From NCBI GenBank assembly GCA_964247055.1, contig OZ176050.1, forward strand, positions 8,804,001 to 8,868,000: a DNA stretch of 64,000 nt, in the 5' to 3' direction. Position numbers and translations under genes: made by a program. Position 1 is the stretch's first letter, and each line of letters starts with the position of its first letter. This stretch comes from Paragordius varius. Its lineage: Eukaryota; Animalia; Nematomorpha. Below are positions 9,301-11,985 of this stretch, piece by piece. The notes beneath the pieces were generated by a model. The model saw only the letters and a program-made list of their open reading frames with translations, was not told the DNA's origin and searched no databases.

Positions 9301-11985
9301 AAATATATTTATAGATATTATGTTTAAATTTATTTGTTTTTTTGACCTATTTATACTTTAAGGGATACTGATTCGCATACCGTTGGAGGAGAGCTTATAT
9401 TGGGTGGAACTGATCCGAATTATTACACGGGAAATTTCACTTATGCGCCTGTAACCATGGCCGCTTATTGGCAAATCAAATTGGATAAGTTTAATTTAAT
9501 TTCCATATATATTATTGACTACTTTTTCATAACAACACATAAACATTTCGGATTTTAGGGAAAAAAACCTCAGGAACTAAAGTCTGGTTTCAATGGATTT
9601 TTTGGATAATTTTGGTTTTCTGGTTTATTGTTTTATGCAAAAATAATTTGTTTTCATTTATATTTTTTGGTACATTATTGTATATTTGCTCAATTTTTTA
9701 ATATAGAATGTCTAATTATTTTAATACAGGTAAATTAGCCAAATATAAGCATATAACAACAAAATTTCGTGATCTCTTTTCTTTGAAATTTTACGAAAGA
9801 CAATTTGACATTATTAAATAAGGCTAATATATTAAAATCATAAAGAAGATTTAAAAAATTATTTTATGGGACCGTTTGAAAGCGCGATTCCGGTCTCTTA
9901 AACAGGTTCGGAACCGTTTTCAATCTAACATTTTTTAAAAACCTTTATGATTTAAATTTTTCCTTTAAAATTGGGTCTTGAATTTTATAATTTTTCTTTA
10001 GAGATAGATTCTTATTCTAATTAAGTTTATTTTTGAAATATTTTTTCCTTTTAAGTGTCCACGTGTCAGGGAATGAAGCAAAACCGTTTTGTAGCGATGG
10101 TTGTCAAGCCATAGTCGATACAGGTACTTCTTTAATGACCGGTCCCAGTCAAAGTGTCGCCGCGTTGGCTGAAATAATTGGTGCCCATAAATTCATTACG
10201 CAAGTATTTTGCCAATATTTATCACGATTTATATTTAATTGTTAATAATATTATTAGTTTTTTTTGGCTACTTTTATTAATAAAATTTTTGTTTTATATA
10301 TATTTTTTCTATATTTTCATAATTACAGTATATCATTTACGCTGGCTTATTCATATTGTTGTCGGCAAAATAGTAGCGCATATAAAACAAATTTCGTCCA
10401 TATTAAAATAGACAAATTAATGTTGTTAGATGGGAATAAATTGTATAATTTCAGCATTTCGTTGCTTTTACCCATACACTACAGTGTAATGACCAATAAT
10501 AATGTGAATAAGCCAGCATAAATGCACAATATATTTAAGAAACTGATGTTTTATTACTGTAAACCTTGTAATTTCCGTTCAATACCACATGGAAACATTT
10601 GTTTTTCCCTTTTTTTGTTATCATTTTACTCCATTTAGTATATTGTGGATTGCAACAATCTTAAAACTCTACCTAACGTAACCCTTACCATTTCCGGGAA
10701 AGATTTCGTATTAACCGCTGAGGATTACATATTAAAAGTATATTTCATTTTTTTTCTAAAATTTAATAAAAATCGACAATTTTAACCGGTTTTTTATGTT
10801 TTTTCTACGCATAAAGGTTGGTAGTTCCGGTACACGTGTTTGCATGCTTGGTTTTATGGGATTAGATGTACCAGGCCCTTATGGGCCATTATGGATTTTA
10901 GGTGACATATTTATTGGCAAATATTACACTGTTTTTGATGCGAATCCCGCCGGGCCTAGAGTTGGTTTTGCAACGGCTGTACCGCAACGGAAATTGTCAA
11001 AAACACTTTCTTCCAATCTTCTCAACAACAATAATCGAATAAGAGAATTTGAAAAACATGAACGTGATATTGTTAAACTCATAGATTCTTGGTTAGACAC
11101 CAAAACTAATGATAATAAAGATGAAACATTGGAAAGGACAATTAACGGTAATATTTTTATATTATAGGATATGTGTTTGAGCAATAATTTGTTTTTATTA
11201 TAATGTAACAGACATAATTTTAATTCCGATTTGTTAATAGAGAAATAACTGCAAATGAAAGTTTGACCTAATTACATGCAATTACATTTATCGTTTATTA
11301 ACAAATAAAAAGACCTATTAACCATTAATCTGATTGCTTAAAATATAACTTATTTGTTTATTATGTTAGATATTGGCATCTCCTTTTATATTTTAGAAAG
11401 TTTTCGTTAAAATATATGTAAGTATACTTGATAAAATACTGACTGCCCTTAGCTGAAATTTGGTAATGAATTTTTTAAATTTATAATTGCGGTGATAAAT
11501 ATATGTATGCTTCCAGGCCAGAGTTTAATTTGTAAGTAGGTTTGTATGTTTTTATTACCGATTACATCCTCTTTTTTTCAGAGTTGTCATCATCACAAGG
11601 CGAGCAATCAATTCAATCTAGCTCCCCAGTCAACAAGGGTCAAAACCGAGGTTTTTTCGATTACTTCTTTAAAAGTCACCAGTCGACTGGGAATGAAGCC
11701 AAAAATATCGATGGGAGATTGAATGATTTTACACATTCATGTGCTGAAAACGTTGATGAAGATATTTATTCTCTCTTTTCTAGTAACCAACATTTTGGCA
11801 GGAATGACAACAAAAGATATTCTGAATCGAATTATTTGCTTTGGAATATGCATCACTTCTCCACAACCACCCTTTTTACCTTTGGTCTAATCTTGATTAT
11901 GTTACTAATTTTGTGTTATTCAGTTTTCCCAGGCCATACGCCTCGTAAAAGTATGCCTAAACTTAGAACGCATACCATGTATTGA
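6351..11985 (+). CDS. CTSD: Cathepsin D-like aspartic protease (A1 family) with long C-terminal extension and transmembrane helix; 10 exons, ~595 aa
   Basis: Exons 6351-6397, 6420-6492, 6519-6623, 6647-6889, 8544-8755, 9363-9488, 10056-10203, 10639-10737, 10817-11147, 11582-11985 (1788 nt, in frame). Signal peptide, YLDAQYFG, two catalytic DTG motifs ([20 protein letters not shown]), FDGILGMAF and [16 protein letters not shown]. The last exon is inferred from phase compatibility and an open frame. Confidence 0.9.
8031..8052. repeat. (AG)n microsatellite
   Basis: agagagag run in CTSD intron 4. Confidence 0.9.

Follow-up and report, generated by a model that had tools for sequence, protein, structure and literature searches.

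We tentatively propose, at slightly less than even odds, that Paragordius varius, an animal whose gene set is much reduced, retains just one protease of the pepsin family and has made it into a type I membrane protein by way of a lineage-specific orphan exon, an architecture that resembles that of BACE but would have arisen independently of it within Metazoa, and that may replace receptor-based (mannose-6-phosphate/sortilin) delivery of cathepsin D to lysosomes. The gene concerned lies in the window analyzed here, a stretch of 64,000 nt (positions 8804001–8868000 of contig OZ176050.1, forward strand), to which all coordinates below refer. The assembly that contains the window has 110.6 Mb in 44 contigs, and the genome is AT-rich, with a GC content of ~26%. 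The gene was built by reading the three forward frames and fitting GT-AG boundaries, and the homology searches were all run exon by exon.

The cathepsin D gene has nine exons on the plus strand (6351–11147), and every intron is bounded by GT and AG. Exon 1 (6351–6397) provides the ATG and the signal peptide, while exons 2 (6420–6492) and 3 (6519–6623) encode the propeptide, with LTNYLD at the C-terminal end of the latter exon. The introns that follow these three exons are ultra-short GT-AG introns of 22 nt (6398–6419), 26 nt (6493–6518) and 23 nt (6624–6646), and the signal peptide and the propeptide stay in frame only with them. Exons 1–3 together encode 75 residues ahead of AQYFG, with the hydrophobic signal peptide at their start. 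The pepsin fold then occupies exons 4–9, each of which matches the Pfam family Asp (PF00026) above its cut-off of 19.9 bits, in the expected order and with profile positions 1–314 of 315 covered. Exon 4 (6647–6889; profile 1–78, E 5.8e-30) carries the first catalytic motif, DTGS (6707–6718), and the flap YGTGS (6842–6856), and it is followed by exon 5 (8544–8755; profile 83–146), exon 6 (9363–9488; profile 147–184), exon 7 (10056–10203; profile 190–228), in which the second catalytic motif, DTGT, lies at 10117–10128, and exon 8 (10639–10737; profile 235–267). The first part of exon 9 (10817–10978; profile 271–314) encodes the final strands of the fold up to VGFATA. Introns 4–8 span 79 to 1654 nt, with introns 5–7 at 435–607 nt, and the phases of the nine donors are, in order, 2, 0, 0, 0, 2, 2, 0, 0 and 1. 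Directly upstream, and head-to-head with the cathepsin D gene, is a gene on the minus strand for HEM4 (uroporphyrinogen-III synthase), which was recognized from Pfam matches in two open stretches within 5553–6335 (profile 16–110 and 118–230); the ATGs of the two genes (~6312 and 6351) are 38 nt apart.

Judged by the solved structures nearest to exons 4, 5 and 9, the protease is of the cathepsin D type, nearer to that enzyme than to pepsin, renin, cathepsin E or BACE, with an ordinary domain that is not BACE-like. The catalytic pair of family A1 is present, one D-T-G motif in each lobe. The best PDB matches of exon 4 are cathepsin D chains (E 8e-36), and human cathepsin D is the best match of both exon 5 (E 1.3e-20) and exon 9 (E 7e-17). 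The description of the enzyme as cathepsin D-like in an earlier note on this DNA is thus borne out by the two DTG motifs and by the rank of cathepsin D in the PDB matches of these three exons. The Pfam propeptide family has no match in the gene; in the PDB proenzyme chains, the exon 4 match begins at residues 53–76, which fits a zymogen layout. The sequon site that we take to be the equivalent of Asn70 of human cathepsin D reads NGK here. Chains of BACE/memapsin are absent from the complete lists of PDB matches of exon 5 (58 matches) and exon 9 (52 matches), which extend to E values of 0.001–0.01, and any membrane anchor on this enzyme would therefore be independent of BACE. That independence, too, had been suggested earlier, and the domain matches of exons 5 and 9, in which no memapsin chain appears, agree with it. 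A PF00026 scan of the whole genome (110 Mb) matched only exons of this gene, and the protein sequences of exons 4 and 9, used as queries, matched only themselves in the genome, with no A1 paralogue of shared architecture. These searches thus detected no second A1 gene, although counts from the PF00026 scan are lower bounds.

The unusual part of the gene begins where a pepsin fold would normally end. VGFATA is encoded at 10961–10978, and the frame stays open for a further 56 codons (10979–11146) before a GT at 11148–11149, so that the last base of exon 9 would be 11147 and its donor (ACG|gtaata) of phase 1. This second part of exon 9 (10979–11147) is rich in Asn, Lys and Leu and has no family match. 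Read without splicing past 11147, the frame continues as GNIFIL and closes six codons on at a TAG (11165–11167). At the acceptor to which the donor probably joins (ttttttcag|AG), the first base of exon 10 would be 11582, directly after tcctctttttttcag and 434 nt past the donor. The split codon G+AG then specifies Glu and is followed by 133 codons and a TGA stop (11983–11985). The ten-exon join has 1788 nt and encodes 595 residues with zero internal stops, and the extension amounts to 56 + 1 + 133 = 190 residues. The earlier note had described this same arrangement, a run of ~56 residues past VGFATA to a phase-1 donor at 11147, an acceptor at 11582 in frame with a 134-codon exon, and an extension of ~190 residues; we arrive at the same coordinates, phase and length, and at a 595-residue join free of stops.

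Phase and splice signals make the splice from 11147 to 11582 probable, and with it exon 10 (11582–11985) is the probable last exon of the gene in all or some of its transcripts. Among the nine donors of the gene, only that at 11147 has the phase 1 needed by the acceptor at 11582, and its gtaata fits the GTA pattern of 8/9 donors. The pyrimidine run of the acceptor is the longest in the gene, and the proposed intron 9 (11148–11581; 434 nt, GC 0.24) is similar in size to introns 5–7. A frame that has no stop in the 56 codons after the fold and is shut six codons after the donor is also what would be expected if the splice site were used. Against the join, a phase match is by itself a 1-in-3 event, and the codon test gives the exon 9 extension only +4.6 bits over its 56 codons. 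Even without splicing, 62 codons or more would be read beyond VGFATA, as against 190 with it.

The in-frame TAG six codons past the donor also bears on a reading that we regard as appreciably less likely, namely that there are two isoforms: if intron 9 were retained, or the transcript polyadenylated inside it, the product would be a soluble form of 467 residues (ending in TINGNIFIL, with a 62-residue extension), and splicing would give the membrane form. Intron 9 contains an AATAAA at 11304, the genome scan detected a single A1 gene, and the cathepsin D enzymes of trematodes carry C-terminal extensions of tens of residues, all of which speak for such a pair of products. The early stop is, however, expected by chance, as is the AATAAA, of which base frequencies predict ~1.1 per 434 nt of DNA this rich in AT. 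The idea of two isoforms is compatible with the join, and should it hold, a possibility that we would not put high, a single A1 protease would be soluble or tethered according to the 3′ end chosen. A search of intron 9 for RNA genes or repeats returned nothing beyond snoRNA noise under the threshold and repeats attributable to chance.

Whether or not it is joined to exon 9, exon 10 is, by its coding signal, a coding exon unable to start a protein alone. The open stretch that contains it (11536–11982) has 149 codons, for which P is ~1.3e-6 under intron composition, where a stop is expected every 11–12 codons, and when the window was block-shuffled 200 times, stretches of such length arose at 0.045 per 64-kb window. 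Scored by codon-usage log-odds, with the pepsin-fold exons as training set, exon 10 reaches +0.23 bits per codon, which is at the top of the range of the window's other long open frames, while intron 9 scores -61 to -93 bits; the GC content of exon 10 is 0.37, as in the real genes of the window, compared with 0.24 in intron 9. The exon is single-copy in the genome and is therefore not a repeat. We consider it very improbable that exon 10 yields no protein, being open by chance or the remnant of a decaying gene, even though the searches run found no homologue of it and an open stretch of 151 codons lies nearby on the minus strand (12289–12741), from which it follows that long open frames here are not always genes. 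That stretch differs from exon 10 in having a score of -0.20 bits per codon and a GC content of 0.25. The two alternative frames of exon 10 contain 4 and 14 stops, its acceptor is strong, and it encodes a well-formed helix with a basic tail. The minus-strand stretch itself is of non-coding character and without a Pfam match, and its openness is unexplained, as lengths like that also occur at 0.045 per shuffled window. Between it and the stop codon of exon 10 is an inverted repeat (12025–12284) whose 59-nt arms have a complementarity of 78% and are separated by 142 nt, in what is presumably the 3′ flank of exon 10.

The first in-frame Met of exon 10 is at 11848, and coding signal is present in the 88 codons upstream of it, and exon 10 therefore needs an upstream coding exon. 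That exon could in principle belong to a separate orphan gene: cathepsin D would then end at the TAG at 11165, and an ATG mini-exon within 11168–11581 would combine with exon 10 to encode a membrane protein of ~148 residues. Two ATG mini-exons (11363–11399 and 11363–11405) do extend to a GT in phase 1 and keep the frame open across the junction, and the lack of a homologue for exon 10 is as seen in orphan genes. Genes here are also tightly packed, the upstream neighbor of cathepsin D starting 38 nt from its ATG, and with such very short intergenic distances locally a small separate gene downstream is conceivable. The donors of the two mini-exons are, however, gttttc and gttaaa, and T at +3 is found in only 1/9 of the cathepsin D donors, whereas the candidate with a good donor (11507–11531, gtaagt) creates, by our reading, a TAG at the junction. 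The leader of 12–14 residues that the mini-exons would supply contains Asp and Glu and would make a poor signal peptide. A separate gene also fails to explain why 56 codons are open past the fold and why the frame closes right after a phase-matched donor, and we believe this arrangement to be unlikely.

None of the searches uncovered a relative of exon 10. The only Pfam match was Claudin_2 (E 0.027, sub-threshold); a word search of 5.8 billion clusters gave no match in the allowed length band; the best score in the ESM Atlas was 0.75, under any useful score; a full HMMER scan of 1.84 billion representative proteins yielded no relative; and there was no match among PDB sequences. As exon 10 has no relative in these searches, conservation cannot vouch for the junction. 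The 56-residue extension of exon 9 had no match in Pfam and only a spurious repeat match, to a designed protein, in the PDB, and the word search with exon 9 returned 22 C-terminal fragments of cathepsin D, all of which end at the fold and none of which covers >56% of the query. The species' own protein was likewise not found in the protein collections searched, and the empty searches are thus silent on exon 10 in close relatives. In the literature searched, we found no paper joining Nematomorpha and cathepsin D, nor any on a C-terminal transmembrane segment in an enzyme like cathepsin D. If true, the finding of an anchor on an animal cathepsin D, apparently the sole A1 enzyme of its genome, by way of one orphan exon would be new.

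The two parts of the extension differ in composition, the 56 residues from exon 9 being N/K/L-rich and the 133 from exon 10 S/N/F-rich, and neither part contains an N-glycosylation sequon. The first portion of exon 10 (11582–11862) would form a Ser/Asn/Phe-rich stalk, which has no family or structure match and a fold predicted at low confidence only. It is followed by a predicted transmembrane helix of 22 residues (11863–11928), in which the Kyte-Doolittle mean over 19 residues peaks at 2.64; this hydropathy profile accords with the transmembrane segment that the earlier note had suspected there. An AlphaFold model of exon 10 alone (mean pLDDT 63) is confident only for residues ~90–114, where it places a helix over the hydrophobic segment, with pLDDT of 89–95 in the 10-residue blocks that span exon 10 residues 91–110. 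The remaining segment, up to and including the TGA stop (11929–11985), encodes a putative cytosolic tail of 18 residues. The earlier note gave the hydrophobic string exactly, but its basic tail was one residue short, as the tail starts with Pro and has 18 rather than 17 residues. Charge is distributed asymmetrically around the helix, with four K/R and no acidic residue after it and no K/R in the 15 residues before it. With a signal peptide at the N-terminus, and then a C-terminal helix with a basic tail, the topology predicted would be type I, with the protease lumenal or extracellular. A GPI anchor was considered and rejected, as the hydrophobic segment is followed by an 18-residue polar tail with four K/R. 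By reading, the tail has no lysosomal sorting motif of the YXXphi or [DE]XXXL[LI] type.

Compared with enzymes of the cathepsin D type (MEROPS A01.009), the P. varius protein shares the signal peptide, the propeptide, DTGS, DTGT, the flap YGTGS and coverage of Pfam Asp from 1 to 314 of 315. The known enzymes are, however, soluble, and no more than a few residues follow their fold, while here 190 more residues with a predicted transmembrane helix would follow. Provided that the inferred junction is correct, the protein would resemble BACE1 and BACE2 in having a lumenal A1 domain, a single C-terminal transmembrane helix and a short cytosolic tail. It differs from them in that its domain is not of the memapsin type (by the PDB matches of exons 5 and 9), in that its stalk is of ~150 residues instead of a few, and in that the anchor is on a separate orphan exon. 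The tail of BACE1 carries an acidic dileucine motif, which the tail here does not have. Further A1 enzymes that are anchored C-terminally include plasmepsin V and enzymes of plants and oomycetes. In fungi, C-terminal extensions are predicted to serve as transmembrane or GPI anchors in several A1 clades (PMC4079213), so that the statement of the earlier note that membrane anchoring in family A1 is typical of BACE was too narrow. C-terminal anchors have been gained several times in family A1, in BACE and in the fungal clades among others. Fungal clade IV, with its transmembrane or GPI anchors, and the yapsins provide a close parallel, as they too have a low-complexity C-terminal extension ending in an anchor on an ordinary A1 domain. 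The extension sequences are unrelated, however, and the host domain here is an animal cathepsin D; in addition, in contrast to the yapsin-like GPI-anchored enzymes, the hydrophobic stretch here is followed by a basic tail of 18 residues and reads as a transmembrane segment.

The product that we envisage is a type I membrane preprocathepsin D of 595 residues, which would consist of a signal peptide, a propeptide, a complete lumenal domain that is predicted to be catalytically competent, a mostly unstructured stalk of ~150 residues, one transmembrane helix and a short basic tail. The anchor would keep the zymogen membrane-bound on its way along the secretory and endocytic pathway to acidic compartments, where the exposed stalk would probably be cut, freeing the soluble enzyme. 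For its orientation, its routing and its possible release, we draw on the anatomy of the membrane form and on known systems. Two of the latter are informative: lysosomal acid phosphatase is made as a type I membrane precursor, and the food-vacuole plasmepsins of Plasmodium are type II membrane zymogens that are later released. The route proposed here is like that of lysosomal acid phosphatase in that an anchor would direct the protein to an acidic compartment prior to its release by cleavage, although acid phosphatase is of another enzyme class and has a tyrosine motif in its tail. Plasmepsins I–IV are likewise single-pass membrane precursors that are routed to an acidic compartment and cleaved free, as is proposed here, but they are anchored via their N-terminal propeptide (type II). 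A role at the surface, in the cuticle, in the gut or at a host interface, as the earlier note had suggested, is unsupported. Enzymes of the cathepsin D type work at acid pH, and a surface or cuticle role fits poorly with this acid optimum; we find delivery to lysosomes as a membrane-bound precursor more plausible than a host-interface role.

Sorting receptors were sought by six-frame scans of the genome, which are insensitive to split genes. No match was obtained in these scans for Stealth_CR2 (the GlcNAc-1-phosphotransferase domain), for CIMR (the CI-MPR repeat) or for Sortilin-Vps10, and the cation-dependent Man-6-P receptor family gave a sub-threshold match only. These scans lend at most weak support to receptor-independent sorting of cathepsin D. 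The finding of one A1 locus and of no detectable sorting receptors could be due to the extensive gene loss described in parasites of this kind, or to limited sensitivity.

The consequences depend on the junction. If it is false, the gene encodes an ordinary cathepsin D whose C-terminal extension is in the style of helminths, and it lies beside an orphan exon. If it is true, a soluble lysosomal hydrolase would have turned into a membrane protein through the gain of one young exon, and this would represent a second, independent way in which animals have come to tether an A1 protease to a membrane. The sorting of lysosomal enzymes would also become testable in a lineage in which the usual receptors are undetected. 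For a parasite, a sole aspartic protease would be an obvious marker or target in studies of feeding.
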